IMG/VR virus record: IMGVR_UViG_3300035698_007246
Location: 159,880 to 223,879 of that record
DNA length: 64,000 nucleotides
Strand: one strand, 5' to 3'
Shown: positions 2,016-61,269 of the stretch, piece after piece
How the letters are laid out: each line of letters opens with the position of its first letter
Numbering within the stretch: position 1 is the first letter of the stretch
Notes under the pieces: generated by a model
Database searches by the model: none
Seen by the model: only the letters and a program-made list of their open reading frames with translations
Told to the model about the DNA's origin: nothing
Program-made: the position numbers and the translations under genes

Positions 2016-2283
2016 TTTCTTTCCTCCACGCGTCATTATTATAATCATTTATTTCACTCATGGTCTCTTCAACCATAAAAATTTCTATTTTATAAACATG
2101 TCCATCTGTTGCATATGATTTTTTGATTTCGGTCACTTTACATGTATCATATGGCAAAGAAGGATGAGAAATATTCTCACCTTCTTTTGGTATAACTGGA
2201 AATGAAAAATCAATCATCATATTATCTATTTTTGGTTCTGGTGATTCTTGGTTATATTCTTCAATCAGACATACACAATTCAT
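2008..2283 (-). CDS. Hypothetical protein
   Basis: ORF starting immediately after the RNR stop (ATG 2283). Confidence 0.55.
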   Translation of the reverse strand: MNCVCLIEEYNQESPEPKIDNMMIDFSFPVIPKEGENISHPSLPYDTCKVTEIKKSYATDGHVYKIEIFMVEETMSEINDYNNDAWRKENV

Positions 2284-2284
2284 A

Positions 2285-5200
2285 TTAAGCCCCACATCCA
2301 GAATATCCACAATCATTACAAACAAAACATCCACTTTGCATAGCAATACTATCACTTTTACATGTAGGACATATCATTCCGACTATTGTTGTACCATTAT
2401 CAATTGTTTCAGATACAAATTTTCTAATTGCAGTTAATAATGTTGATACATTGTCGCCTTCAATACCTTGTAATGAAACAAGAATATCTTGTCGTGCTAT
2501 GTTATGTCTCAAACAAAGACTAACCATTCTACCCAATCTATTTGCATTAGTATCACCAAGGCATTTGTCCCAGGTGTCTTCTACAATCTTAACACTAATT
2601 CCACAGTCAATAGCAAGCACACATAAACTTTTACAAGCCTTAGTACATGCTCTTGTATCATTTTTAGAATTTGTGTTAATCCACAGTGCCATTGGATACT
2701 TCATATCAACATCATCAGGGAAGTAACTGAAATTAATGTAGAATTTCATCCCTTCACGTTTAATCGTCCTTGTAGGGCCGTTAATGAAGGTCTCAGGGAG
2801 TTTTACGCCCTTCTTTATGATAGTTTTTTCCTCTTCAGCACTTTCAATCTTAGAAAGAACGGATTCCATAGAACCTGTACGGTATGTTGTTACACCAATG
2901 AGTCCTTTTTTCCATGCTTCAAAATATAATTCTTTAAATTTTTCAAATGAATATTTATTTGGTAAATTTATTGTTTTCGAAACAGACTGATTACAGTAAT
3001 ATTGAACTACTTCTTGAATGTTAAGATGGTCTTCAATTTCCAAATCATCTGTTGTGACCAAGAAATCAGCTTTCTTATGTTCTGGATAATTTTCAAGAAT
3101 CCAAGCATAACCATAATCACAAAGCGTATACATTTCACACAAACCTCTATTATGCGGTTCGTAGTAATATTTTGTTCCTTCATAGTATCCCTCCCAGTAA
3201 GTAAAATCCTTTTTCTTTTTTTCTTTAAGGATTGTTTTTACATTATCGGAATTCATGCCTTCAGGAAAAGCACATATCACTTTTCTCTCAGATTTCAAAT
3301 CAAACACAGGTTCAATTCCATTTGATACATTATCACACACCACAGATGAATTACCTAATGGTGGATTGGTTGTGGTTTTAGCATTTCTGAGACCATATTG
3401 TTTAATTAATTCTTTTGTTTCATCTGTTAATCTATCAGATTTGAAATAAGGTGTCTGACTAAATAAATCATAATTGTATAATGGGAATGACCCTTTTTCT
3501 TTAGCCAATAATGCACTTGATTGCATTGTAATGTTTTCCTTAAGTTGTTTAATTTTTTTAGTAAACGTAACAGCTTCTTGTGAGTTATATTTAATACCCA
3601 ACATAACCAATGTAGAACCTAATCCATTAATACCCATACCAAACTGTCTTAGATTTTCTACAGCCCATGCATATGATGGTAATGGCAATTCAGTCAAATC
3701 ACACACATTATCTAACATTCTTGAGTATGTAACGATGTCTTTTTTATACAATTCCAAATTAAAGTATGGAACATCATTACGGATTTCTACATACATTGTC
3801 AAATTAAGTGAACCTAATAGACACACAGTAGACATTATTGGATTACCTGGTATCTCACCACATCCTCGACTCACATACCCTTCGGTATTCCAATCATCAG
3901 CAGTTGGTTCATGCAAATCATAAACATCACCAAATCCAAGAAATTCAATTTCTTTTATTTTAGTTTTCCACTTATTTCCTGTTAATGATGTAGTTTTGAT
4001 AATTTGTTTTAATTTTTCATTTTTTTCATCATGACTAAGTTTATGTACAAATTTATAAAAATTTAAAATTGAATCATTATCAATAACACCTTCAAAGATA
4101 TCATGCCGCCTCACAACATCACGTCCATATATTTTTGCTGTCTCACCTTTTTTACCACACAAATATTTCTTATAATCACACCCTGCGGTAAGCATTATAT
4201 GTTTTACCAATAAATGTAATTTTTCTGATATATTTTTAAATCTAACTTGTGGATATCGAGAAGTTAAATTCACATTCCCATCAGATGAAATTAACCCATC
4301 TATCAATCCAGATAAAAAATCATCATTAAAGTTTAACAATTTCATAACATCAAAATTGGATTTATCATTAGCATCAATACCGAAAACATCAAATAATAGT
4401 TTAATCTTCCCTTCGGTATTTATAGCATAATATCTCTCACAATTTCCATCAGATTTATCGATTCTATAATCAAAACCAAACCTGTTATACAATTCAATTA
4501 TATAATCATTATTTTCATTTGAATCTGTTGATATATTAAAGTTTTTATAATTAGAAAAACATCCATCTCCAAAATATAATCCAAATAACATTCCAACATC
4601 TCTGATGTCGAATAGTTGCTCGCCATTTATAGCATCAACAGATATTACGCCATTATCCACACATGATGGATTATACTTAATCATATCATAAGGTTGTTTT
4701 CTTACGTTATCACCAACATTTAAATATTTTAAACGTGTGTTATTGTCCCACCGTTTTCTATTTTCTGATGTTCCATTTTGAGTATGAAAAATATGACCTT
4801 CAGTTACACCCTGATAAAACCCATCTGTGAAATGAACTCTATAAATTGGCTGATTTTCATGAACTTCTATATTATCAACACTACCATGCCCTAACGTTGT
4901 TTGAATTTCTTCACCGACTTTTACATCTTCAACTCGTTTTAGTCCGTGTTTAGTAGCTACTAATGTTCCTTTTACAACACAAGGATTTGTAGCATTACAT
5001 TCACCCAAATAGAGAATTGGGTTGTTTTTATTCATGTTATCAACGAATACTATACCCGGTTCAGAGCGATTGTATGTAGATTTCATAATAAGGTCGTAAA
5101 GTTTCTTAGCTTTCACACGTTTTACTACTTTACCATTCCATATTAAGTCCCACATAGCATTATCAGCAACAGCATTCATGAAATCATCACTCACTGCAAC

Positions 5201-5956
5201 ACTCATGTTGAATTTAGTTAGCTTACCAGACTCTTGTTTTGCTCTAATGAACTCTTCAATGTCAGGGTGCCATACAGAAAGACATCCCATCATAGCACCT
5301 TTACGTATATCTTTATCACATTCACCAAAATATTCTTTAAGCTCTTCAACAGAAGCATAGTTTTTTAATGAATCAAGGTATCCATCATTGTCACCTTTAA
5401 CAATACAGTCAGAAACCTTGTCCCAAATCTCCATATAAGAGATAACTCCGGGGTGTCTAACACCAGTTCCTTTGATTAAACTACCACGAGGTCGTATAAA
5501 GTCAAAGTTTATTCCATACCCACCCTCGGAAGCAAGAGTTTTTGCTTGTTCCATGATAGATAAGAAGATGTTTACGAGTTCATCTGGTGTATCAGGTGTA
5601 GTGATTATTATTTCATTCTTGAAATGTTCATTCTGTCTTATGTATTTTATAATGGCATTACTAACAGGACCATTAATAAAACAGTTCATTAGTGTAGCAT
5701 TGTAATAATCAGTTCCTATATTGGTTGTAATTCTACCACCCGGTGAACATTTAATACCTAATGGATTCCCCATACTATCAAAACGTATCATTGTTTCAAG
5801 AAAAATGGGATACCAATATTCAGAATCTACTTCATTATTAGCAAGTGCCCTTGCTATTCTTTCAAATGTCCCAAGGGGGGTCTCACCATCATACTGATAT
5901 TTTCCCTTCCAATTATTATATGCAATTTTCGTTTTGAAAAAGTTTTCATCACGCAT
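2285..5956 (-). CDS. nrdJ: Adenosylcobalamin-dependent (class II) ribonucleotide reductase with intein
   Basis: SPGGRI, TLMNCF, GGYGINF, RKGAMM, HPDIEEFI, EPGIVF, TNP[intein]CGE, CLLGSLNL, NGIEPVF, VSKTIN, GVTTYR and C-terminal CxxC..CxxC; no nrdB neighbour. Confidence 0.9.
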   Translation of the reverse strand: MRDENFFKTKIAYNNWKGKYQYDGETPLGTFERIARALANNEVDSEYWYPIFLETMIRFDSMGNPLGIKCSPGGRITTNIGTDYYNATLMNCFINGPVSNAIIKYIRQNEHFKNEIIITTPDTPDELVNIFLSIMEQAKTLASEGGYGINFDFIRPRGSLIKGTGVRHPGVISYMEIWDKVSDCIVKGDNDGYLDSLKNYASVEELKEYFGECDKDIRKGAMMGCLSVWHPDIEEFIRAKQESGKLTKFNMSVAVSDDFMNAVADNAMWDLIWNGKVVKRVKAKKLYDLIMKSTYNRSEPGIVFVDNMNKNNPILYLGECNATNPCVVKGTLVATKHGLKRVEDVKVGEEIQTTLGHGSVDNIEVHENQPIYRVHFTDGFYQGVTEGHIFHTQNGTSENRKRWDNNTRLKYLNVGDNVRKQPYDMIKYNPSCVDNGVISVDAINGEQLFDIRDVGMLFGLYFGDGCFSNYKNFNISTDSNENNDYIIELYNRFGFDYRIDKSDGNCERYYAINTEGKIKLLFDVFGIDANDKSNFDVMKLLNFNDDFLSGLIDGLISSDGNVNLTSRYPQVRFKNISEKLHLLVKHIMLTAGCDYKKYLCGKKGETAKIYGRDVVRRHDIFEGVIDNDSILNFYKFVHKLSHDEKNEKLKQIIKTTSLTGNKWKTKIKEIEFLGFGDVYDLHEPTADDWNTEGYVSRGCGEIPGNPIMSTVCLLGSLNLTMYVEIRNDVPYFNLELYKKDIVTYSRMLDNVCDLTELPLPSYAWAVENLRQFGMGINGLGSTLVMLGIKYNSQEAVTFTKKIKQLKENITMQSSALLAKEKGSFPLYNYDLFSQTPYFKSDRLTDETKELIKQYGLRNAKTTTNPPLGNSSVVCDNVSNGIEPVFDLKSERKVICAFPEGMNSDNVKTILKEKKKKDFTYWEGYYEGTKYYYEPHNRGLCEMYTLCDYGYAWILENYPEHKKADFLVTTDDLEIEDHLNIQEVVQYYCNQSVSKTINLPNKYSFEKFKELYFEAWKKGLIGVTTYRTGSMESVLSKIESAEEEKTIIKKGVKLPETFINGPTRTIKREGMKFYINFSYFPDDVDMKYPMALWINTNSKNDTRACTKACKSLCVLAIDCGISVKIVEDTWDKCLGDTNANRLGRMVSLCLRHNIARQDILVSLQGIEGDNVSTLLTAIRKFVSETIDNGTTIVGMICPTCKSDSIAMQSGCFVCNDCGYSGCGA
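3863..4981 (-). mobile_element. Intein (373 aa) with LAGLIDADG homing endonuclease in the RNR NP|CGE motif; atypical C-terminus ...SRG
   Basis: Starts CVVKGTLV; block B TEGH; LAGLIDADG motifs GLYFGDG and GLISSDG; block F VYDL; removing it restores TNP-CGEIP. Confidence 0.85.
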
Positions 5957-5974
5957 TCATCATTCTCCTTTAAC

Positions 5975-6460
5975 TTATTTAAAAATGTGTTTTTCTGTTA
6001 GAATTTTAAATTCATAACCATGTTTTTTACAATATCGCACGGTGGCAATCCACTTATTATTATTTTTAATCCACCTTACCATTTCATAAGTGTAACGTTC
6101 TTGCCGTTTCTTATTCTTATTCATTGGTTTTTGGGGTGGAAGAGTTTGTTTGTGTGGTTTTATTTCAATTATATATTTTGTCACCTTCCCGGTCTTGTCT
6201 CGTATATCAGCGATTACATCCGGGTAATATCTATGAAATTTATTATCAACTTCAAACAAATAAGGAATTGCTATTGATTCAGAACTCCACCGTAAAATAT
6301 TTTTATTGAAATCCGCCCAAACAAACACTCTTTTTTCATACGAACTTCTATAATATGGGTCACCTTTGCCCATATATTTTGATTTATTCACAGGGATATA
6401 AGTTCCCTGCAAATAATTTGTATTACTTTTCATCCTCATCCCCAATAGGAGACAAAGCAC
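5975..6460 (-). CDS. gp4: Head completion nuclease (T4 gp4-like, TnsA-type PD-(D/E)XK)
   Basis: KYMG..YRSSYE..WSSESIAIPY..HRYYPD..IEIKP..NNNKW..FKILTE. Confidence 0.85.
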   Translation of the reverse strand: MLCLLLGMRMKSNTNYLQGTYIPVNKSKYMGKGDPYYRSSYEKRVFVWADFNKNILRWSSESIAIPYLFEVDNKFHRYYPDVIADIRDKTGKVTKYIIEIKPHKQTLPPQKPMNKNKKRQERYTYEMVRWIKNNNKWIATVRYCKKHGYEFKILTEKHIFK

Positions 6461-6474
6461 TCATCACTTATAAA

Positions 6475-7554
6475 CTAAATCAATTCTTTAAAATACCTTG
6501 ACACCTGATTCCAGTTAGACATATGTTGTGTTAATTGATGTTTCATAAAAAATGACATAATTTCAGAACCATTAGTTGGTTTGAAATTTTCATCTTTATG
6601 TGTTGTATATATATTTATGATTTCATTTTTTATATCATTTGGAATCTTTTTCAAATCAATCAAGTTTATATTTCTTTTATAATTAATATGCACTTGAGCT
6701 TTATCTTTTTTGATAAAATATTCAATTTCATCCTTCGTCACCACAGGTCTATTATCTTCAGGTGGTAGACAATCTTCTCCAATAGGAAGAAGACAATACA
6801 ACAATGTGTCTTCATCAGACATCCATTCACGTCTTTTCATTTTACGTGTAATTTTGTATTTAAGATTATCAACAAAGTCATCAAGCCCAGTTTTTATTAT
6901 TTTTTCAGCAGTCATTTTACCAACACCATATCTAACACCAGTAATAAAATCAGAGTGATCTCCTGTTAAAATCTTCATCTCTAATTCAATTGCAGGATTC
7001 ATACATTCAACAATTTCTCTTGATTTTGGGTCATATTGATGAACATTAGGATTTACCAACAATTGACGCATATCACCATCATTAGAAACAATTGTAATAT
7101 CATCAGTTTTGAAAATTTCATTAGCACACACACCTATAATATCATCACCTTCTGTATGAGGTGCTTTGATAACATATATATTTGTAAATGTTTTTTTAAT
7201 ATCATTAATAAACTCATCAAATATTCTAAAAAAGAGTTCCCAATCTATCGGCAATTTACTTTTTGCCTTTGCAGACTTTCTGTGAGCTTTATAATTGGGA
7301 TATATGTTATATCTCCAACTACCCTTCTCATCAAAAGCGAGAACCACGGTATCAGGATTAAATTTTGCAATCACATTAAATATATCATTTAAAAATGCAT
7401 GTTTCCATAGTGCAAATGTTGTTATATCATCAGGGTTACGGTAGATGTCAGAATATAAACATCTATACGCTATGTTGTGACCATCCACGATTAAAACTTT
7501 TTTCAAACTATTTTCAGAAGTCTTATCACCAAAAAGTTCACTTAATTTACACAT
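6475..7554 (-). CDS. rnh: T4 RNase H / 5'-3' exonuclease
   Basis: VDGHN, SWRYNIYPNYKAHR, EGDDIIG, SNDGD, LTGDHSDFITGV (FEN-type). Confidence 0.88.
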   Translation of the reverse strand: MCKLSELFGDKTSENSLKKVLIVDGHNIAYRCLYSDIYRNPDDITTFALWKHAFLNDIFNVIAKFNPDTVVLAFDEKGSWRYNIYPNYKAHRKSAKAKSKLPIDWELFFRIFDEFINDIKKTFTNIYVIKAPHTEGDDIIGVCANEIFKTDDITIVSNDGDMRQLLVNPNVHQYDPKSREIVECMNPAIELEMKILTGDHSDFITGVRYGVGKMTAEKIIKTGLDDFVDNLKYKITRKMKRREWMSDEDTLLYCLLPIGEDCLPPEDNRPVVTKDEIEYFIKKDKAQVHINYKRNINLIDLKKIPNDIKNEIINIYTTHKDENFKPTNGSEIMSFFMKHQLTQHMSNWNQVSRYFKELI

Positions 7555-51989: not shown

Positions 51990-52478
51990 ATGAAAATTTT
52001 TGAAAGAAGTATTATTGATGAAATTGATGGAATGATTAATGAAAGTTATCTTTTTGAAAGATATACATTCCAACCAGTGAGCGAATATAATGCAGATACA
52101 AATGTTTCATTTGATGTTTTTAATGGTGATGAGAGAATTGCTTCTGTCAGAATTGTAAAGACTGATGGTGAACCATTAGACGCTGTAAATGACACATATG
52201 ATTATGATGATGTCTATGCTGACGTTTCATTAGAACTTGCTGGAAAAGAAGATGAATATGACGTTGAATCCGTAAAGAAATGGGTTCTCGGAAAATTGTC
52301 AACAATGGGGTTTGATAAAAACCCAGCGAAAATTGATGACGAAGAATATGACGTTTCTAAGTATAAAGAAGAAATCGAAGATGAATCACCTGATAGAGAA
52401 TTTGATGACGTTAGAAGTGATGTCGAAGATACCGATGATGGAGAAGGATTTTCTTTAAGTGACTTAGAAGAAGAATAA
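51990..52478 (+). CDS. Hypothetical acidic protein
   Basis: GGAGG Shine-Dalgarno. Confidence 0.6.
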   Translation: MKIFERSIIDEIDGMINESYLFERYTFQPVSEYNADTNVSFDVFNGDERIASVRIVKTDGEPLDAVNDTYDYDDVYADVSLELAGKEDEYDVESVKKWVLGKLSTMGFDKNPAKIDDEEYDVSKYKEEIEDESPDREFDDVRSDVEDTDDGEGFSLSDLEEE

Positions 52479-52491
52479 AGGATAATTTTTA

Positions 52492-53400
52492 ATGATTACG
52501 TATTACTATCCACGTACATTAAGAAGTATAAGTGTTGCCATACTAAATATGTTTAATGATATGAAAGTCATTAGGTATGATAAGTATGGCAACCCGTTAT
52601 ACGAGAGACATGTACCTATAACATGGGGACCGGTTGAGAAATATCATCTTGACAGAATAGAAAACCATTACGTTGATAGTGATGGTGTTCAACATAACGA
52701 GAAGTATTATTTACAAATACCAAGAATGGCTCTTGTATTAAATGGTATTGCATATGATAGCAGTCGAGCTATTGGTGTGAATCAATGGCGTGGTTGGTTT
52801 AAAGAGTCGTTGAATGTCTCGGATTCAGAAATTGATGATATGGTATCCGATGGGGCTATGTCTATAACAGATTATCAACCAACACCATATAATTATAATT
52901 TCACATTACATATAAAAACTGATTCTACAGATTACCTTGCTCAAATACTTGAGAATATTCTCCCATATTTTAATCCAAAATTACATTTACGGGTTAAAGA
53001 GTTTTCATTTTTAAATATCGAAAGGGATTTGCCTGTTTCTATTGATGGTGTGAATCCAGAATTTGTTGATGATATGGATGAAAATGAGACAAAATTTGTC
53101 AATGCAACAATCAATTTGACGATTGAGGGTTGGTCTTATAGAAAATTTTTATATTCAAAAGTAATTAAATATATCAACAGAAAATATTATTTACAAGATA
53201 CAGGTAAATTTTTAGAGGGATTTAGTGTTAGTGGTGTCAAGACATCAGGTGCAACATCTGAGACCCCAGGAACACCTATCATATTGAGTGCTGTGCCACC
53301 TTTAGATAGTTATTATGTTAGTGGGTATTTTTATGACCCTAACAAAGAGTTTAATTGGTTCCAAACATATCATGATACAAGTGGGTTTGGGATATTTTAA
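52492..53400 (+). CDS. gp15: Tail sheath stabiliser/terminator (T4 gp15-like)
   Basis: YYYPRTLR..FNDM..VPITWGP..PRMA..YDSSR..PTPYN..QILENILPYFNP. Confidence 0.88.
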   Translation: MITYYYPRTLRSISVAILNMFNDMKVIRYDKYGNPLYERHVPITWGPVEKYHLDRIENHYVDSDGVQHNEKYYLQIPRMALVLNGIAYDSSRAIGVNQWRGWFKESLNVSDSEIDDMVSDGAMSITDYQPTPYNYNFTLHIKTDSTDYLAQILENILPYFNPKLHLRVKEFSFLNIERDLPVSIDGVNPEFVDDMDENETKFVNATINLTIEGWSYRKFLYSKVIKYINRKYYLQDTGKFLEGFSVSGVKTSGATSETPGTPIILSAVPPLDSYYVSGYFYDPNKEFNWFQTYHDTSGFGIF

Positions 53401-53409
53401 GGAGATATT

Positions 53410-53976
53410 ATGGCTTTGAGTGGAGCACCTATGGATGGTGTATTTGATGGATTGGATGAAGAGTTCAACACCGAATATGATGAAAATATAATTGTTCCTG
53501 AAGATGATGATATGGAAGAAAAGAATCTTCCTGTTGTTGCTAAAAGTAAAGCAGTACAAGTATCTGACGATGTTGTTATTGTTGGAACAGAATATGTATC
53601 TGATGAGATTAAAAGTCTAATTGATTCAAGTAAAAGTGTATTGGGTAGATTGGATTCTACTATTAAAATTGGAGGAGCACCACGATTGTTTGAGGTGTAT
53701 TCCCAATTAACAAATTCGATAACTGCCCAGATAAAAGAATTTAGACACATGCATGAAGCAGTTGCGAAAATTAAATTGGAAGAAAAAAAGAAGAATATTA
53801 ATAAAATAGAAACTGGTGATAATATAACATTTACGTCTGAACAAGTGCTTGATTTGATTATAAAAGAAAAAAATAGAAGTGAAATTGAGACAATTGACGC
53901 TGATTTTGTTGTAGATGATACTGAAATCTTAGATAAACATGATGATGAGGATGACGATAATGTCTGTGTTGTGTAA
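53410..53976 (+). CDS. gp16: Terminase small subunit (T4 gp16-like)
   Basis: APRLFEVYSQL motif; position between gp15 and gp17. Confidence 0.7.
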   Translation: MALSGAPMDGVFDGLDEEFNTEYDENIIVPEDDDMEEKNLPVVAKSKAVQVSDDVVIVGTEYVSDEIKSLIDSSKSVLGRLDSTIKIGGAPRLFEVYSQLTNSITAQIKEFRHMHEAVAKIKLEEKKKNINKIETGDNITFTSEQVLDLIIKEKNRSEIETIDADFVVDDTEILDKHDDEDDDNVCVV

Positions 53977-54403
53977 ACTTAAATATTTAATAGAGACTGA
54001 TGTCCCTGAAGAACATATTTTTATTAATGTGAGAAATATTGATGATGAAAATGAATCTTTTGTTACTGGTATTGAAAAATTAGAAAATGAAATTGATGAA
54101 TTAGAAATAGATGTCGAAAAACAAGACAACAGATTTGATTATGAGAAGGTCGTAGCTGGCTCAGAAGACATTGAAGTTGATGAAGACTACCATAGGATAC
54201 CTTTTGATGTTAAAGTGGCTAATTTGGGAGATATGGACATCTCTGAATTTGTTAAAGAATACATTGGTGGTAATTTATCAAATAAACAACTATCGTATGG
54301 TGAAGAGGGTGAAATTCAGTTTGAATTGATACCTGTCATGACAATGGTTAAAAAAATTAATGACAACCATGCACGATTTGAAATTGAATGGAATGTTGTA
54401 TAA
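53960..54403 (+). CDS. Hypothetical acidic protein
   Basis: GAGG Shine-Dalgarno before ATG 53960. Confidence 0.55.
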   Translation: MSVLCKLKYLIETDVPEEHIFINVRNIDDENESFVTGIEKLENEIDELEIDVEKQDNRFDYEKVVAGSEDIEVDEDYHRIPFDVKVANLGDMDISEFVKEYIGGNLSNKQLSYGEEGEIQFELIPVMTMVKKINDNHARFEIEWNVV

Positions 54404-54420
54404 AATTAAGTAGGTAATTT

Positions 54421-54807
54421 ATGTTTCAAGGTAATGTAGGATTGCGAGCTGAAGGTGAGCTGGTAACATATACAAAAGAAATAATTAATGAATATATTAG
54501 ATGTAAAGAAGATATAATCTATTTTGCAGAAAAATATTTTTACATAACAACAATCGATGATGGTAAAATAAAAATACCATTGTGGGATTTTCAGAAAAAA
54601 GTTTTAAAGGCGTTTATAACACCGCCTAAAAACAGAAGGCATATAATAATGATGATGCCACGCCAGCAGGGTAAGTGTTTTTTAGATACAACTATAGTGA
54701 AATTGAGAAACAAAAAGACTAAAGAAATCAAAGAGTTACCAATAAAAGAATTTTTTGATATGATTATAGAAAATTATAAAAAGACACATAATGATAAAAA
54801 TGCCTAA
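54421..54807 (+). CDS. gp17: Large terminase N-terminal fragment (85 aa) fused to the split-intein N half (43 aa)
   Basis: EYIRCKEDIIYFAEKY..LWDFQ..PRQQGK|CFLDTTIVKLRNKKTKEIKELPIKEFFD. Confidence 0.9.
   Translation: MFQGNVGLRAEGELVTYTKEIINEYIRCKEDIIYFAEKYFYITTIDDGKIKIPLWDFQKKVLKAFITPPKNRRHIIMMMPRQQGKCFLDTTIVKLRNKKTKEIKELPIKEFFDMIIENYKKTHNDKNA
54676..54807 (+). mobile_element. Split intein N-fragment (short, atypical)
   Basis: Block A CFLDTTIV begins inside Walker A GK|T. Confidence 0.85.
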
Positions 54808-54884
54808 ATAACTAAGGATGTGTTTTGGAAAATGTATAAATACTTCTAACTATAAATATAATTTAAAAATTTGGAGTATTAAAA

Positions 54885-56084
54885 ATGATAGAAGTTTATG
54901 TTTGTGAAATGTGTAAGATGGAATTTACAGTTAAAAGAGGTTTGAAAAATCACAACAAAAGATTCCACCCTGAATTGTTTGCATACAAATGTGAAATGTG
55001 TGGAGAATTAGCTGAAGATTTAAAAGGTTTATTGATTCATGTGACTAAGAAACACAAAAATGCTGAAGAATATTTTAATAAATATTTATCAGGTAAAGAA
55101 AAATGTAGATATGAACATTGTAATGAGGCTTTAGAATACAATAATAGGTTTAGTGGGTATTATTGTTGTCAGTCACATTATGAAGCACAAAAGAAAATTA
55201 ATAATGGTATTAAATTGAATTTTATATGTCAAATTTGTGGTTCTGGGTTCGAAGATGTTGGTGGATTACAGCAACATTTAACAAAGATACATAAATTTGA
55301 TGTTATTAAAAATAAAGAATATTATGATAAATATTTAAAAATAGAAAATGAAGGATGTTGTTTATATTGTGGTAAAGAATTAAATTTAGTTAAAAATAGA
55401 TTTACTGAAGGTTATATGAAGTTCTGTTATAATACAGAATGTAATGTCCGTTGGTATAATGAAAATGATAATAGAATTGATAAAATGTCAAATTCATTAA
55501 AACAGACACATCATGATAACCCAGAAATTTCTCCATTAAAAAAAGAATATTGGATGAGTAAAGGTTATTCTGAAACACAAGCAATTGAAAAAGTTTCAGA
55601 AAGACAAACAACATTCAGTAAAGAAATTTGTATTGAAAAATATGGTGAAGATGATGGTATTAAAAAATGGCAAGATAGACAAGAAAAATGGCTTGATTCT
55701 ATGCCAAGAATGAATTTTTCTAAAATAAGTCAAGAATTATTTTGGGGGATTTATAAACATATTAAAGATAGATATAAGAATGTGTATTTTGCGAGTTTTG
55801 TTGGTGGTGATAGAGATGATAGTAAAAATAGAGAATATCGCATAAAAACAAATAGGTCATATAGATTATTAGATTTTTATATTGAGGATGTCAATAAATG
55901 TATAGAGTTTGATGGAACATATTGGCACGGTGAAATAGGTAGAGGCAACAGAACTCGTGATGAAGATAGGACAATTGAAATTTTGGAGGTTAATCCAGAT
56001 ATGAAAATATTTAGAGTAAAAGAAGATGATTACAATAAAGATAAAGAAAAAGTAGTACAAGAATGTATTGAATTTTTAAATTAA
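54885..56084 (+). CDS. Free-standing endonuclease (C2H2-like zinc fingers plus Vsr/PD-(D/E)XK-like domain) between the terminase halves
   Basis: CEMC..H..H repeats; LDFYIEDVNKCIEFDGTYWHG; TATAAATA at 54835 and 54851. Confidence 0.8.
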   Translation: MIEVYVCEMCKMEFTVKRGLKNHNKRFHPELFAYKCEMCGELAEDLKGLLIHVTKKHKNAEEYFNKYLSGKEKCRYEHCNEALEYNNRFSGYYCCQSHYEAQKKINNGIKLNFICQICGSGFEDVGGLQQHLTKIHKFDVIKNKEYYDKYLKIENEGCCLYCGKELNLVKNRFTEGYMKFCYNTECNVRWYNENDNRIDKMSNSLKQTHHDNPEISPLKKEYWMSKGYSETQAIEKVSERQTTFSKEICIEKYGEDDGIKKWQDRQEKWLDSMPRMNFSKISQELFWGIYKHIKDRYKNVYFASFVGGDRDDSKNREYRIKTNRSYRLLDFYIEDVNKCIEFDGTYWHGEIGRGNRTRDEDRTIEILEVNPDMKIFRVKEDDYNKDKEKVVQECIEFLN

Positions 56085-56096
56085 TGGGAGTTAGAT

Positions 56097-56780
56097 ATGA
56101 ATAATATTGAAGAAATCTTGAATTGCGTCGATGATGTTGGATATTTTGCTAATAATTATATTCAGCATATAAATATTGATGTTGGTTGGAAACAATTTTC
56201 ATCGTATAAATTTCAAGACATACTGTTGAATTATATGCATAGTATTCCATATAAGAAAGATGTTTTAGTTGGGTTGTTACCAAGACAAATGGGAAAAACA
56301 CTTTTAGAAATTATTTATCTTATTTATTATGTAACTTTTAATAATCATAAAAATATAATATTTTGTGGATATAAAGGTATAGTATTAGACCGGATAATTA
56401 CTAATTTTTTAAAATCATATGAAAAATTGCCAGAATTTTTAAAAAAAGATATTGTGAAAGATGACAAACATAATATTAATATTGGTAATAATAAAATATC
56501 GTTTGTTGTTGCTAATTATGTGTTTGATGACGATTGTGAAGATGAAAAAATAGATTTAGGAATTTTTGATGAATGTTTTTTAAATAATGGTATTAGTAAA
56601 TTTGAAAAGATTATTATACTATCAACAAAAAATATAAAAAAAGAAAGTTTTGGTGACAATTGTTATATGGTTAAAATAAATTGGTGGGAACACCCATATC
56701 ATGATATTGAATGGAAAAATTCATCTGTACAAAATTTAACTGAAACAGTATTTGGTAGTGAATATGATAATCGTGGATAA
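56097..56780 (+). CDS. Terminase-ATPase-like paralogue with no intein and no nuclease domain
   Basis: YFANNYI..YKFQ..PRQMGKT..YEKLPEFL..IFDE..ILST..WWEHP..EW..FGSEY. Confidence 0.75.
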   Translation: MNNIEEILNCVDDVGYFANNYIQHINIDVGWKQFSSYKFQDILLNYMHSIPYKKDVLVGLLPRQMGKTLLEIIYLIYYVTFNNHKNIIFCGYKGIVLDRIITNFLKSYEKLPEFLKKDIVKDDKHNINIGNNKISFVVANYVFDDDCEDEKIDLGIFDECFLNNGISKFEKIIILSTKNIKKESFGDNCYMVKINWWEHPYHDIEWKNSSVQNLTETVFGSEYDNRG

Positions 56781-56786
56781 ATAACT

Positions 56787-57131
56787 ATGGGAAAGATAAT
56801 AGAGTCATATGGTGTAGATGATTGGGAAGTATTGACTGATGATGGTTGGGTAGACATCCAACAAATACATAAAACAATTAAATATGATGTGTGGAAAGTA
56901 AAAACAAAAAATCATTTTTTAAAATGTGCTGATGAACATATTGTAATTGATAAAGATTATAATGAGGTTTATGTTAAAGATTTAAAACGTGGTGATAGAA
57001 TAATAACTGAATCTGGTGCAGAAAAGGTTATATCTGTTAAAAAATTAAAATGCAATTCCGAGAATATGTATGATATGTCGATTGATTCTGATACTCACAC
57101 ATATTTTACAAATGGTATATTATCACACAAC
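56787..57131 (+). mobile_element. Split intein C-fragment (long)
   Basis: Block B CADEH, block F MYD, block G SHN followed by Thr(+1). Confidence 0.88.
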
Positions 57132-58403
57132 ACAACCATTTCAACGGTATATCTCTTGCATTACATGTTGTTTAATAAAGATAAAAATGTTGCTATACTT
57201 GCTAATAAAAAAGACACTGCTTTAGAAATTATGCAACGTGTGAAAATGGCATTTGGATTGTTGCCATTGTGGTTACAACAAGGAATCAAAGAAGGTGGAT
57301 GGAACAAATCATCTATCAGATTTGAAAACGGAATGGTGATGAAGGCTTCGACAACATCATCTGATTCTATTTCCGGGGATGTTGTCTCACTTCTATATAT
57401 GGATGAGTTTGCTAAAGTAAAACCTCATATTGCTGAAGAGTTTATTACTGCGACTTACCCTGTTATTACATCGGGTAAGACATCTAAAATTATCATGGTG
57501 TCAACACCCCTTGGAATGAATCATTTTTATGAATTTTGGACTAATGCAGTAAGAGGTCCAGAACGTGATGGGAATAACTTTTATCCAATCAAAGTTAGTT
57601 GGAAAGAACATCCCAAACGTGACCAAGAATGGAAAGATGAAATACTTAGAGATATCGGACCTACCAGATTTAACCAAGAATTTGGGTGTAAATTCTTAGG
57701 TTCAAGTGATACATTGATTGATGGGGATGTTCTTGAAAATATTGCATATAAACCATCTGTTGCCACAAAATGGGGTGGATTATTTACAATATTTGAAAAA
57801 CCTGTTGAAAAAGCGTTGTATGTTCTTGGGGTTGACTCAGCTAAAGGGACTGGAAGAGATAGTTCTGTTATTCAAGTACTTAGAATTATTGATGAATTTT
57901 CTATTGAACAGGTTGCGATATACCGATATAACAATATTGATACTCATAAATTTTCTCAGGTTTGTATTGGCATAAGTAAATATTATAACAATGCGTATAT
58001 GATGATTGAAAACAATGGTGAAGGTGGAGAAGTAGCTAACATCATTTGGTATGAGTATGAAGAGGAATGTGTTTTAAATTGTGATAAAAAAGGACTTGGA
58101 ATTAGGTCAACTAAGAAAAGTAAGTTATCAGCTAATTTACATTTAAAAAGATATCTTGAAAATGGTTGGTTACGATTAAATGACAAAGAGACAGTTGTTG
58201 AGCTGTCAAAATATATAGAAGTGACACCTAATGTGTTTAGAGGTGAAACTCGTACAACACATGATGACTGTGTAACCTCTTTATTATGGGGCTTATATTT
58301 TTTATTGACACCATTTTTTGATGGTAAAGATGTGGGTGTTAAGAACATAGACAGTAAGTATGATTTAGGGGATGATGACGCTCCTTTGGTATTTTTTTCA
58401 TAA
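56787..58403 (+). CDS. gp17: Split-intein C half (115 aa) fused to the large terminase C-terminal part
   Basis: ..CADEH..MYDMSI..TNGILSHN|TTISTVYLL..ILANK..LPLWLQQG..MDEFA..VSTPLGMNHFY..GVDSAKG..HDDCV. Confidence 0.92.
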   Translation: MGKIIESYGVDDWEVLTDDGWVDIQQIHKTIKYDVWKVKTKNHFLKCADEHIVIDKDYNEVYVKDLKRGDRIITESGAEKVISVKKLKCNSENMYDMSIDSDTHTYFTNGILSHNTTISTVYLLHYMLFNKDKNVAILANKKDTALEIMQRVKMAFGLLPLWLQQGIKEGGWNKSSIRFENGMVMKASTTSSDSISGDVVSLLYMDEFAKVKPHIAEEFITATYPVITSGKTSKIIMVSTPLGMNHFYEFWTNAVRGPERDGNNFYPIKVSWKEHPKRDQEWKDEILRDIGPTRFNQEFGCKFLGSSDTLIDGDVLENIAYKPSVATKWGGLFTIFEKPVEKALYVLGVDSAKGTGRDSSVIQVLRIIDEFSIEQVAIYRYNNIDTHKFSQVCIGISKYYNNAYMMIENNGEGGEVANIIWYEYEEECVLNCDKKGLGIRSTKKSKLSANLHLKRYLENGWLRLNDKETVVELSKYIEVTPNVFRGETRTTHDDCVTSLLWGLYFLLTPFFDGKDVGVKNIDSKYDLGDDDAPLVFFS

Positions 58404-58428
58404 ATATGTTTAGGTCAATGAAAAAATG

Positions 58429-58448
58429 TATAAATAATTATATAAATA
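58429..58448 (+). promoter_or_regulatory. Tandem T4-type late promoters (TATAAATA twice) upstream of the sheath gene
   Basis: TATAAATA at 58429 and 58441; the motif also occurs at 25101, 25380, 36172, 37854, 41405, 46391, 47812, 50181, 54835, 54851, 60377 and 62487; gp55 is encoded in the window. Confidence 0.85.
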
Positions 58449-58481
58449 GAAAATAGATATTAAATTTGGGAGGTAATTAAT

Positions 58482-60374
58482 ATGCCAAGAGTATTTAACA
58501 CTCCGGGTGTGTATAGACGAGAAATAGACTTAAGTGAAATACTTATAGCTACCGGCATTTCAAATGGTGCCATCGTTGTACGTTCATCGCAAGGACAAAT
58601 AAGAAGACCTGTATTGGTTTCAAATGATAAGGAATATGTAGAACAATTCGGTCAACCTGTGTTCACATCAGGAAGCGGATTATCTGGTATTGATAAACTC
58701 ATTCCTGAATATGGATACGGTTCTTATGGAGCATTAGAATTTTTAAAAGAATCAACGAATCTTTACGTTGTGAGAGCGTTTGATAGTGGTGATGTGTATG
58801 CAGCAATGGGAGTTGGTGTTACTTTATCTGCTGATGATACTGATATTAGTGGAGGTATTGACCCATTAACGGCCACACCAGATGTTTTTGATACACGGGA
58901 TAACATCTCAAGTATTAATGAAATCGGTGATAGTATGACTGGGGCATTATTTGCGTCATTCATAAGTCCGGGTGAAGCAGGTAATGAATTTGCTTATAAT
59001 ATTGAAACATTACATCCAGACGCTGATTGGATATATCGTTATGATGAATATCCAACAGATAGTTCTGCAACAACAAATGGTCCGGGTTCAATTTGGACAT
59101 CAGGAACAAGTGCTGATATTGCAACACATTTTCCAATTGCAAGTAAAGTTTTTAAAATTAAACTTTATAAACGACCAGTTGATAAAATTTGGAATGATTT
59201 GTATTCAAATTCAGCAGACGCTGAAAATAAAAGATTAAGATTACAAGAAGTCGAATCATATTATTGCACATTGGGTCCTCAATTGGACGCTGATGGAAAA
59301 TCATTATATGTTGAAGATGTTGTAAATGGCAATTCACAATCCATTTACATGCAATCAAATATAAGTTCAATATTGGCTTATTCATATACGTTCTCAGGAA
59401 CAAGTGGTTTTTCTAATCTTCCGGGTGGTGAAGATGACGCAGGTGCTTATTTTTATAACACAACAAGATTATGTCAACTATCAGGTGGTACTGTAACCCA
59501 ATCTAATGGTTTGGGTAGTGGTGATGATGAATTCTGGGCTTATTTTAATGACAGAGAAGAAATTCCTGTTCAAATATTGGTTGGAACAAGTTATAACACA
59601 ACTACAAAACAAGCTATGGGTAACCTTGCAGTTAAGAGACTTGACTGTATTGGAACTGTACAAGCAGGAGAACTTGATGATATAACATATCAAAGAATTA
59701 TTGAATCAGAAAGATATGGGTATGTGTCTCCGTCATATATTGCTATTTATGGTGGTTATTCAAAAATTTATGATAATAATAATGACAAGTTTGTATATTT
59801 ACCGAATAGTATTTATGGTGCGTCATTGTACCCACGTATAGATAATATTTCAGACCCTTGGTATGCTCCGGCAGGTATTGACAGAGCAACACTATCTGTG
59901 TTTGACCAACGTAAGATATACAGTGCAGAACATATAGGAAAACTATATGATAAGAACATCAATATGGTGAGATTCATTAGAGGTTCAGGATTCGTAATGT
60001 GGGGTCAAAAAACTGCACAATTAAAGAAATCTGCCCTTGATAGAATACAAGTAAGAAGATCTTTATTGTTTATTGAAAATAATATTGAGATAGCATTGCT
60101 TCCATTTGTTTTTGAAAATAATACAGTACAAACTCGTTTACGTGTTTGGTCATTGATTGATGAATTTCTTGCAGGTGTATTTGCAGCAGGTGGTCTTACT
60201 AAGTATGAAGTTGTTTGTGATGAAACAAACAATCCATTATCTGTAATTGACGCAAATCAATTAAACGTGGATATATATACACAGCCGGTACGCACATCCG
60301 AATTTATACAGTTTACTACGGTCGTAACTCGTACAGGTATCAGCTTCAGTGACTTGAGACTTAAATACGCGTAA
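58482..60374 (+). CDS. gp18: Tail sheath protein (T4 gp18)
   Basis: TPGVYRREIDLS..LYVVRA..PWYAPAGIDRA..WGQKT..SALDRIQVRR..FVFENN..VVCDETNN. Confidence 0.95.
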   Translation: MPRVFNTPGVYRREIDLSEILIATGISNGAIVVRSSQGQIRRPVLVSNDKEYVEQFGQPVFTSGSGLSGIDKLIPEYGYGSYGALEFLKESTNLYVVRAFDSGDVYAAMGVGVTLSADDTDISGGIDPLTATPDVFDTRDNISSINEIGDSMTGALFASFISPGEAGNEFAYNIETLHPDADWIYRYDEYPTDSSATTNGPGSIWTSGTSADIATHFPIASKVFKIKLYKRPVDKIWNDLYSNSADAENKRLRLQEVESYYCTLGPQLDADGKSLYVEDVVNGNSQSIYMQSNISSILAYSYTFSGTSGFSNLPGGEDDAGAYFYNTTRLCQLSGGTVTQSNGLGSGDDEFWAYFNDREEIPVQILVGTSYNTTTKQAMGNLAVKRLDCIGTVQAGELDDITYQRIIESERYGYVSPSYIAIYGGYSKIYDNNNDKFVYLPNSIYGASLYPRIDNISDPWYAPAGIDRATLSVFDQRKIYSAEHIGKLYDKNINMVRFIRGSGFVMWGQKTAQLKKSALDRIQVRRSLLFIENNIEIALLPFVFENNTVQTRLRVWSLIDEFLAGVFAAGGLTKYEVVCDETNNPLSVIDANQLNVDIYTQPVRTSEFIQFTTVVTRTGISFSDLRLKYA

Positions 60375-60376
60375 TA

Positions 60377-60477
60377 TATAAATAATAAAGAGAGGGACAG
60401 TGGGTAGCTCCTATTTCCTGAAACCTTTACGAGTAAGGATTACCTCTCAATTTTAAAAATCAGTAAAGGAGATTATA
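60377..60477 (+). ncRNA. Structured cis-regulatory RNA leader, copy C (with late promoter)
   Basis: TATAAATA..GAGAGG-GACA-GTGGG[tagct]CCTAT-T-TCCT[gaaaCCTTTACgagta]AGGA-TTA-CCTCTC...GTAAAGGAG..ATG. Confidence 0.8.
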
Positions 60478-61269
60478 ATGAAAGATGAAAAAAGATTTTA
60501 TGTTTATGTGTATCTTGACCCAAGAAAACCGGGAAAATATAAATATGGTGAATATGAATTTGAATATGAACCATTTTATGTTGGTAAGGGATGTGGGAAA
60601 AGATGGAGATATCATTTAAATGAAGCTAAAAATAGAAATGAAAATAATTATAAGTTAAATAAAATTAGAAAAATTATTAATGATTGTGGGATTGAACCAA
60701 TAATTATTAAATATAAAGAAAATTTAGATGAAAATGTATCATTAAATCTTGAAGTTGATATGGTTGATAAAATTGGAAGAATTATAAATAATAATGAAGG
60801 ACCTCTTGTGAATATAACCGATGGTGGTGAAAAATTTTCAGGATTGAAAAATGATTTGAATGGACGGTGGAAGGATGTTGATAAAAATTTGATATTTGGT
60901 TTGTATGAAAATGGAAAAAGTATTGAAGAGATTGCATTGATAACTAAAACAACTATACCATTAATTCGTAGACGAATTATATATTGGGAATTGCCAATAC
61001 GTAAAGATATTAATATTGGAAGAAAAAAATCTATTAAATGCAAAGAAAAAATATCAAAATCTAAAATTGGGTTATATGGTGAGTTAAATGCGAATCATAA
61101 ATATGTTTATACATTTGTTTCGCCAGATAATCATAAATATAAATTTAAAGATATAAATAAATTTTGTAAAGAATATAATCTTAATTATGGAAGTATAAGA
61201 AAATCTTTTAAAAGAAATTCTGAATATTATAAAGATTGGAAAATAGAAAGAAGATTAATTTTAAAATAG
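60478..61269 (+). CDS. Free-standing GIY-YIG-type homing endonuclease between the sheath and tube genes
   Basis: FYVYVYLDPRK..PFYVGKGCGKR..H..LE..IGR..GPLVNITDGGE. Confidence 0.85.
   Translation: MKDEKRFYVYVYLDPRKPGKYKYGEYEFEYEPFYVGKGCGKRWRYHLNEAKNRNENNYKLNKIRKIINDCGIEPIIIKYKENLDENVSLNLEVDMVDKIGRIINNNEGPLVNITDGGEKFSGLKNDLNGRWKDVDKNLIFGLYENGKSIEEIALITKTTIPLIRRRIIYWELPIRKDINIGRKKSIKCKEKISKSKIGLYGELNANHKYVYTFVSPDNHKYKFKDINKFCKEYNLNYGSIRKSFKRNSEYYKDWKIERRLILK

Follow-up and report, generated by a model that had tools for sequence, protein, structure and literature searches.

The large terminase gene (terL, gp17) of a T4-like phage is broken in two in the stretch of DNA analysed here, the final 64 kb of the 223,879-base IMG/VR virus record IMGVR_UViG_3300035698_007246 (estimated completeness 91%); this whole stretch is called the window below. 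The terL halves lie on the same strand, 1,979 nt apart, with two open reading frames (ORFs) between them (54885-56084, 399 aa; 56097-56780, 227 aa, here called ORF227). Each half carries, beside its portion of TerL (the N-extein or the C-extein), one part of a putative split intein, IntN at the end of the first half and IntC at the start of the second. The locus occurs in several salt-lake metagenome runs, and its features are as follows.

54421-54807, + strand: terL N-half ORF, 128 aa (85-aa N-extein plus 43-aa IntN)
54421..54675, + strand: terL N-extein, 85 aa, with the C terminus ...MMMPRQQGK (first half of Walker A); phrog_5989 TerL, E 4e-14
54676..54807, + strand: IntN, 43 aa plus stop codon (54805-54807), beginning CFLD; Cys1, block A, two strands and first helix
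54885..56084, + strand: putative free-standing homing endonuclease, 399 aa; C2H2 fingers, helical middle, C-terminal Vsr-like/EDxHD nuclease domain
54897-54968, 54987-55055 and 55221-55292, + strand: three C2H2 zinc fingers of the endonuclease (Pfam zf-C2H2_4)
55713-56081, + strand: Vsr-like/EDxHD nuclease domain, residues 277-399 (VIA-align of the AlphaFold2 [AF2] model)
56097..56780, + strand: ORF227, divergent TerL ATPase-domain paralogue, 227 aa; Terminase_6N, E 8e-5; phrog_5989, E 6e-22
56787-58403, + strand: terL C-half ORF, 538 aa (115-aa IntC plus 423-aa C-extein)
56787..57131, + strand: IntC, 115 aa, ending GILSHN; block B CADEH (His51), block F MYD (Asp96), block G SHN (His114-Asn115)
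57132..58403, + strand: terL C-extein, 423 aa, beginning TTISTVYLL..., its Thr+1 being the Walker A Thr; Terminase_6N, E 7e-20; Terminase_6C, E 6e-9

These coordinates agree exactly with a preliminary description of this DNA, which had placed gp17 in two ORFs about 2 kb apart (85 aa plus a 43-aa IntN, then a 115-aa IntC plus the rest) with two genes between them; both genes are present, and what had been missed was the identity of the second, a divergent TerL ATPase domain. The same description had proposed that joining the halves would rebuild the Walker A motif PRQQGK/TT, and the alignment bears this out. The joined exteins, 508 aa in all, run without a gap across the junction against the uninterrupted TerL of relative L091 (52% identity), with ...RQQGKTTISTVYLL in the former facing ...RQIGKTTLATIYIL in the latter and RQxGKTT restored. 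On the C-half, Pfam finds Terminase_6N, Terminase_6C and a HINT domain. The C-extein, which is 36-38% identical to the TerL of cultured T4-like phages, holds the remainder of the ATPase domain to about 57686 and the nuclease domain after it. Gene order at the locus is T4-like, namely gp15, small terminase, an unassigned 154-aa ORF, terL and tail sheath (gp18), and a megablast of the locus against cultured phages gave no match. This is the only terL found: in the 91%-complete, 224-kb genome there is no Terminase_6N or Terminase_6C match beyond the split terL and ORF227, and the intein and the nuclease are each present in one copy. An assembly artefact was considered as the origin of the split gene and ruled out, since independent IMG/VR contigs from other samples cover 54724-59699 at 99.98% identity and 52400-54987 at 100%.

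The two intein parts resemble those of a large set of relatives. IntN has a conserved core of about 31-33 aa followed by a variable tail of about 10 aa, and in the distinct IntN sequences of relatives Cys stands first without exception (46/46), the length runs from 30 to 76 aa (median, 35) and the common pattern is C....t.i.iRNKKTGEI...i..F. IntC scores 29.9 bits with Pfam PT-HINT (cut-off, 27.7) and lies above the cut-off of TIGR01443 (intein_Cterm); its sequence matches in the PDB are inteins only (DnaX mini-intein, VidaL, NrdJ-1, gp41-1 and CatC). An alignment of 35 IntC homologues shows no variation at His51, Asp96, His114 or Asn115, and the +1 residue of 120 homologues is either Thr (96) or Ser (24). 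The split leaves block A and the first helix alone in IntN and blocks B, F and G in IntC, which starts at a new ATG at 56787. Judged by these motifs, this is a predicted class-1 intein with an atypical (S2-type) split after the first helix, and it would probably be active in splicing. Relative to four relatives, the ratio of nonsynonymous to synonymous substitution rates (dN/dS) is 0.11-0.21 for IntC and 0.25-0.32 for the IntN core, compared with 0.05-0.06 for the N-extein and 0.04-0.11 for the exteins overall, and for the endonuclease it is 0.15 against relative L005. Such ratios indicate purifying selection on both intein halves and on the nuclease.

Complex prediction also supports docking of IntN to IntC. 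With IntC (plus 20 aa) as one chain and the final 16 N-extein residues plus IntN as the other, the predicted complex reached an ipSAE (interaction prediction score from aligned errors) of 0.73, and three controls scored 0.03 at best. The mark of the IntN-IntC complex was attained by 51/78 solved complexes and by 2/108 mismatched pairs. Three runs shared 90% of contacts, with a partner pLDDT (predicted local distance difference test) of 68. In the model, residues 83-99 and 108-119 of the N-half touch IntC, and the first of these segments (the last three N-extein residues, Cys1 and the first IntN strands) is predicted to contact block B and the terminal His-Asn region.

The first gene in the gap, at 54885, had been taken for a nuclease in the preliminary description, and fold and profile comparisons sustain that assignment for its C-terminal part. 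In Pfam, the protein matches zf-C2H2_4 and, weakly, REase_MTES_1575. Its PDB and Foldseek matches are eukaryotic-type zinc-finger arrays alone; Foldseek with the whole model returned only zinc-finger proteins, and the nuclease domain was recovered solely by VIA-align and by the family profile. The profile, built from 22 endonuclease homologues, has as its sole nuclease match the catalytic domain of I-Bth0305I (3r3p, E 0.0017). In the AF2 model (pLDDT 83.6), residues 277-399 align by VIA-align with the DUF559-like protein 3hrl (Z 9.8), I-Bth0305I 3r3p (Z 9.3 across 94/98 residues) and Vsr 1cw0 (Z 8.3). The motif IEFDGxYWH is invariant in the 22 homologues, as are Glu341 and His348; Asp330 is nearly so, and position 343 is mostly Asp, with Asn in some homologues. 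I-Bth0305I, the EDxHD prototype, has the same C-terminal nuclease fold, and it differs in being intron-encoded and in carrying NUMOD-like DNA-binding motifs. The window endonuclease has no N-terminal region of the NUMOD type; three C2H2 fingers stand in its place. Many of its homologues at other loci have different N termini. With C2H2 fingers joined to a Vsr-like cleavage domain, the predicted protein resembles a natural zinc-finger nuclease. We therefore assign the first gap gene, from its sequence and modelled fold, as an EDxHD/Vsr-like homing endonuclease with an unusual DNA-binding module and a presumed target in terL.

By far the best explanation of these features is protein trans-splicing: the sole terL of this phage is very probably broken within its Walker A codons (GK/T) by a naturally split class-1 mini-intein that trans-splices and is accompanied by a homing nuclease. 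The two terL halves would be translated separately, and the short IntN would dock into the near-complete IntC, completing the HINT fold. Protein trans-splicing would then proceed through Cys1, the conserved residues of blocks B (His) and F (Asp), the terminal His-Asn and Thr+1, and release a 508-aa TerL with an intact P-loop. The break would have been made, or would be maintained, by the free-standing EDxHD/Vsr-like homing endonuclease at the split point, which presumably cleaves terL alleles without the intein in co-infecting relatives and thereby spreads the cassette of intein and nuclease. The gap would later have gained its second gene, ORF227.

Two observations speak to mobility. Synonymous divergence (dS) of IntN/IntC is 0.13/0.82 against L014, 0.62/0.63 against L012 and 0.87/1.05 against L006, while that of the flanking exteins is 1.2-2.4 and exceeds both intein halves in all three informative comparisons, which is the direction expected if the intein homed between diverged alleles. 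In addition, in contigs of relatives from two runs of the same lake system, position 54617 is followed immediately by 57132, where the C-extein begins, and these joints fit intein-less alleles in the same lake. Several points weigh against the trans-splicing and homing scheme. The dS estimates are noisy, those above 1 are saturated and the intein segments they come from are short, so that the homing signal is no more than suggestive; the joints come from short contigs of 80% likeness in which the 58 nt before the junction are unaligned. The complex predictor may partly recall solved inteins, so that its score measures likeness rather than binding. The Thr position of block B is Ala (CADEH) throughout the family; the same CAxxH is found in VidaL, for which a splicing half-time of about 1 min has been reported (PMC13014065), and this block B is therefore compatible with activity. 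Finally, splicing itself, like the specificity of the nuclease, homing and any function of ORF227, is something that we infer.

The halves might instead assemble noncovalently into a two-chain terminase in which the intein pieces serve as a dimerisation module, a prospect that we regard as improbable. The mobE-split NrdA of phage Aeh1 reportedly works without any intein. Phage enzymes that are made in fragments and assemble with no splicing have been documented (PMC3045599), and the predicted docking of IntN and IntC would suit a two-chain terminase as well. Against such an assembly, the break separates the Lys of GKT from its Thr and thus lies in the P-loop; some 160 aa of intein inserted at this point would disrupt the binding of nucleotide. 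Moreover, the residues needed only for the chemistry (Cys1, His51, Asp96, His114, Asn115 and Thr/Ser+1) are invariant in a family that is 45-70% identical.

Still less probable is that the fractured terL is dead and that packaging falls to another terminase, be it ORF227 together with a partner or a terL that lies in the missing portion of the genome (estimated completeness, 91%). ORF227 does have all the ATPase motifs, yet it is without a nuclease/translocation domain, and L005 has the same fracture and no ORF227. The exteins, for their part, are under strong purifying selection, and the halves sit in the conserved gp15-terS-terL-gp18 order of a 224-kb sequence in which no further Terminase_6N or Terminase_6C match was found. 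Least credible of all is joining at the RNA level by a group I or II intron, trans-splicing or translational bypass, for although phage genes with group I and II introns carrying endonuclease ORFs exist (PMC12350094) and the nuclease of one cultured homologue is annotated as "intron-associated," an Rfam scan of 53800-58800 gave no intron family and nothing at E <1 except a chance microRNA match, the insert continues the reading frame of both exteins and codes for an entire HINT domain whose catalytic residues are conserved, and contiguous in-frame versions exist.

The kind of locus that trans-splicing would explain is already known, as the preliminary description had stated: it combines a fractured phage gene, an atypically split intein and an EDxHD nuclease. 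Dassa et al. (2009) reported fractured phage genes, among them a gp17 terminase locus from Lake Gatun (PMC2677866). In their loci, also of phage origin, the N-part with IntN is followed, after a short spacer, by a free-standing endonuclease gene in the same orientation and then by IntC with the C-part, and the window shows this layout plus one extra gap gene. The endonucleases of those loci are GIY-YIG or Vsr-like (PMC2677866), and EDxHD-type nucleases were first discovered in fractured genes (PMC2677866). Among these loci, the terminase intein is the sole exception, with an unusual break point and a 122-aa C-part that is without motif N1 alone; the spacers are 27-51 nt, compared with 77 nt here, and the gap holds no second gene such as that in the window. 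The Dassa-type nucleases are described there as binding DNA through NUMODs, where the window nuclease has C2H2 fingers.

The preliminary description had also named AceL-TerL among established atypically split TerL inteins. Such TerL inteins are indeed known, with published examples having an IntN of 25-37 aa, an IntC of 104-115 aa and Cys+1 (PMC11766414), but AceL-TerL does not appear to be the same intein. AceL-TerL, GOS-TerL and Cat-TerL share with the window a TerL host from aquatic phage, an S2 split after the first helix, a short IntN with a long IntC and class-1 chemistry, and they differ in having Cys+1 instead of Thr+1 and, in GOS-TerL, also Ser1. Relatives of the window (L006, L010 and others) contain a second atypically split intein, with Cys+1, at FNQEYG/CKFLGS in the linker between the ATPase and nuclease domains. 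The Cat consensus matches the linker-site intein of L006 at E 5e-11 and the window IntC at E 0.2 (CatC, 6dsl_B). For this reason, AceL, GOS and Cat-TerL most likely represent the linker-site intein, a lineage and a site distinct from those of the Walker A intein, and from the same match we infer that the native AceL/GOS insertion site is the linker. In L006, terL lies in three pieces (2062-6440) with two atypically split inteins, one at Walker A and one in the ATPase-nuclease linker; L006, L010, L023, L025, L037 and L086 have terL in three pieces or up to three inteins in one terL. Another near relation is VidaL (PDB 6vgv), which IntC matches at E 0.004, just behind the DnaX mini-intein at 0.0036. 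VidaL likewise has the CAxxH block B, an SH ending and a natural split near the N terminus, and it differs in its 16-aa IntN, its earlier split (S1, after strand 2) and its identity of only about 25-30%.

The intein of the window belongs to a large Walker A/Thr+1 family that is apparently uncharacterised. A word-indexed protein search with IntC retrieved 184 proteins, cultured-phage records matching IntC number 310, and an alignment-based scan of IMG/VR gave at least 570 loci with an intein at the Walker A site, about 80 of which were surveyed. Both sides of the intein are visible in 67 of the surveyed loci, 9 being contiguous open frames and 58 split. A gap of 1.0-1.5 kb with a nuclease homologue is the most frequent form (32/58 split loci). 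Gaps of 4-420 nt, some with nuclease remnants (e.g., L026 and L032), are found in 20/58, and the gap has other content in 6/58, such as the two unrelated small ORFs of L006. The 1,979-nt gap of the window is the longest among the surveyed loci. Remnants of the nuclease gene in short IntN-IntC gaps occur at L013 3-353, L026 5135-5344 and L032 2712-2858, which fits decay of the nuclease after fixation.

Two cultured phages illustrate the range. Vibrio phage vB_VchM_Kuja (Ackermannviridae) has its intein at the identical site (...RQSGK/C...SHN/TT...) with Cys1 and Thr+1 and an IntC that is 50% identical, and it differs in that the gene is a single uninterrupted ORF with a linker of about 25 aa at the window's split point and no nuclease. 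A fractured terL is also found in Campylobacter phages (F379, CP220 group). In F379, which is cultured and viable, terL begins with a piece of 167 aa, after which come an endonuclease gene (381 aa) and a second terL piece of 573 aa with an IntC homologue at its head (43% identical to that of the window). Its junction, PRQ/SSKS, differs in lying about 3 residues earlier and having Ser+1, and its nuclease shares only a helical middle region with the window nuclease (E 4e-7). Thr+1, which the preliminary description had presented as special to this copy, is present but commonplace, being shared by 96 of the 120 homologues and by contiguous copies in cultured Ackermannviridae. Sequence comparison thus marks both Thr+1 and the atypical split as family traits and not as peculiarities of the window.

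Other members of the family have more unusual architectures. In L060 (5756-7966), and likewise in L063, N-extein, IntN, IntC and C-extein form a single open frame, 736 aa long. A 304-aa nuclease homologue is nested within that of L060 at 6081-6995 in the +1 frame, and the frame-0 translation across it is of low complexity and rich in R, Q and E. We rejected the idea of an in-frame intein domain because the nuclease ORF lies in the +1 frame; these loci may be contiguous inteins with an overprinted free-standing nuclease gene. Outside terL, IntC homologues 47-60% identical to that of the window head proteins with DnaB-helicase, SMC-like and ClpB-like Pfam domains (P0034, P0045, P0075, P0100 and P0106), each followed by Thr+1. 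From these sequences, the same intein lineage seems to occupy the P-loops of other ATPases.

The sole truly unexpected feature of the locus is the TerL ATPase paralogue embedded in the gap. ORF227 has no Walker A interruption (PRQMGKT) and is 27-28% identical to the TerLs of T4-like phages, and its identity to the phage's own exteins is 31% (N) and 24% (C). Its ATPase motifs are all in place (Q motif; Walker A; Walker B including the catalytic Glu, GIFDE; C-motif, ST), and about 25 residues are missing in two places, after Walker B and after the C-motif. Around Walker A, only about 16 of 30 nt agree with the site formed by the joined exteins. The protein stops at the ATPase-nuclease boundary with no Terminase_6C match, and Pfam finds in it no RNase H-like nuclease/translocation domain as expected of a functional TerL. 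Its AF2 model (pLDDT 90.7; predicted template modelling score [pTM], 0.90) has the fold of the T4 gp17 ATPase domain (PDB 2o0h; TMq 0.81, E 2e-14). From T4 gp17 itself, ORF227 differs in its length of 227 aa, its lack of a nuclease domain, its two internal deletions and its identity of at most 37% to any TerL.

The open frame of ORF227 cannot, on its stop-codon statistics, be due to chance: it has 0 in-frame stops where 24 would be expected in DNA of 23% GC (P ~1e-11), and the other five frames have 11-41. The start codon is preceded, 7 nt upstream, by GGGAG, a good ribosome-binding site. In GC content at third codon positions, ORF227 (0.14) resembles the nuclease gene (0.15) and not the exteins (0.24-0.26). 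An exhaustive search of 1.8 billion representative proteins gave at most 37% identity except for the protein's own fragment, and a word-index protein search retrieved ORF227 alone. That fragment, 113 aa from L011 (532 nt), comes from a contig identical to window positions 55987-56369 (383 nt, which cover the 3' end of the nuclease gene and codons 1-91 of ORF227) and unrelated beyond; a chimera formed in assembly, or else a variant junction within ORF227, is the probable source, and the fragment is of no use for dN/dS. L005, the nearest relative, shares the fracture and the nuclease and has 154 nt in place of ORF227; since the fracture is found there too, ORF227 is not required for the splicing model. 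A read-through fusion of ORF227 and IntC, which are in the same frame and six nt apart, was also considered. We rejected it because a shared frame has a 1-in-3 chance and the fusion would be without IntN; it is further disfavoured by an IntC start that is the same as in relatives without ORF227.

Stand-alone, fast-evolving TerL ATPase paralogues were also seen at other loci. They lie just 5' of a fractured terL in L025 (2095-2793) and L010 (2637-3374), 5' of an intein-less terL in L091 (5001-5762) and, in the P0172 contig, 5' of terS. In every case the protein stops at the ATPase-nuclease boundary. Walker A and/or Walker B residues are lost in P0185 (GKD/FSE), P0254 and P0172 and are kept in the L025 copy. 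The ESM Atlas holds many viral clusters of Terminase_6N-only proteins of about 230-270 aa, many of which may be fragments or N-pieces. In the TerL tree, ORF227 has the longest branch (3.73; median, 0.45) and an aberrant composition; long-branch attraction may explain why it groups with P0142 and the paralogue from L010, and nothing here rests on that grouping.

The preservation of frame, fold and motifs over so long a divergence argues for selection, that is, for ORF227 as a fast-evolving TerL ATPase paralogue that has been kept open. Our best guess for its role is a packaging-related accessory or interference protein. As a tentative extension, and one that we would not call likely, ORF227 may belong to a recurrent, undescribed class of stand-alone TerL ATPase paralogues that act on packaging or terminase recognition and are kept beside or inside terL by aquatic T4-like phages (the window, L025, L010, L091 and the P0172 contig), with the split-intein gap serving as a landing site for cargo. 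Such a protein could, for example, poison the motor of a rival in the same infection, one that the homing endonuclease next to it attacks as well, or act as a decoy for TerL-binding host sensors (Avs-type).

It is slightly more doubtful that ORF227 is a nonfunctional relic in decay, derived from an older terL allele through illegitimate repair or recombination at terL. The long branch with its aberrant composition, the loss of Walker residues from comparable paralogues (P0185, P0254 and P0172), the residues missing in two places (about 25) and the absence of the gene from L005 would all suit a relic, as would the fact that all the paralogues end where the second intein and its nuclease target terL. 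A relic is hard to reconcile with 227 stop-free codons at 23% GC, with identities of at most 37% to any TerL among the 1.8 billion representatives, which imply long divergence while open, or with a protein that keeps all catalytic and invariant positions, is confidently modelled and has a good ribosome-binding site.

The surroundings of the cassette hold further signals and genes, two of which are given here by position.

53410..53976, + strand: small terminase subunit gene (terS), the upstream partner of TerL; phrog_445, E 5e-6
54835-54842 and 54851-54858, + strand: two T4-type late-promoter-like TATAAATA boxes, consensus matches in the 77-nt spacer 5' of the endonuclease gene

The 154-aa ORF between terS and terL (53939-54403, + strand) encodes an acidic protein and overlaps the end of terS by 38 nt; family searches with it (Pfam and phrog) gave no match. 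The TATAAATA sequence occurs 33 times in the window, against 14.4 expected, predominantly on the + strand, and often stands just 5' of genes, as at 58429 and 58441 ahead of the sheath gene. Directly 3' of the tail-sheath gene lies a free-standing GIY-YIG (LEM-3-like) endonuclease gene with a helix-turn-helix (60478-61269, + strand), preceded by a TATAAATA at 60377. It is a second mobile nuclease, no more than 3 kb from the terL cassette.

The locus is a single instance from a population that is very large in nature, with at least 570 loci in IMG/VR and 310 cultured-phage records. Within this family, the stages of a homing cycle can be seen as contiguous inteins, split inteins with an intact nuclease, split inteins with nuclease remnants and split inteins without a nuclease. 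Together with the apparent intein-less relatives from the lake, this range opens the gene-breaking model of Dassa et al. to direct testing through comparison. Protein engineers could draw in this family on hundreds of natural Cys1/Thr+1 (or Ser+1) inteins with IntN cores of about 30-35 aa. To our knowledge, the GK/TT junction is unrepresented among characterised atypical split inteins, which have Cys+1, save the cysteine-less PolB16. Nothing singles out the window intein for the use as a protein-ligation tool that had been suggested for it: it is one candidate among hundreds, and its IntN is relatively long at 43 aa. ORF227, if functional, would represent a hitherto unknown layer of terminase regulation or conflict.

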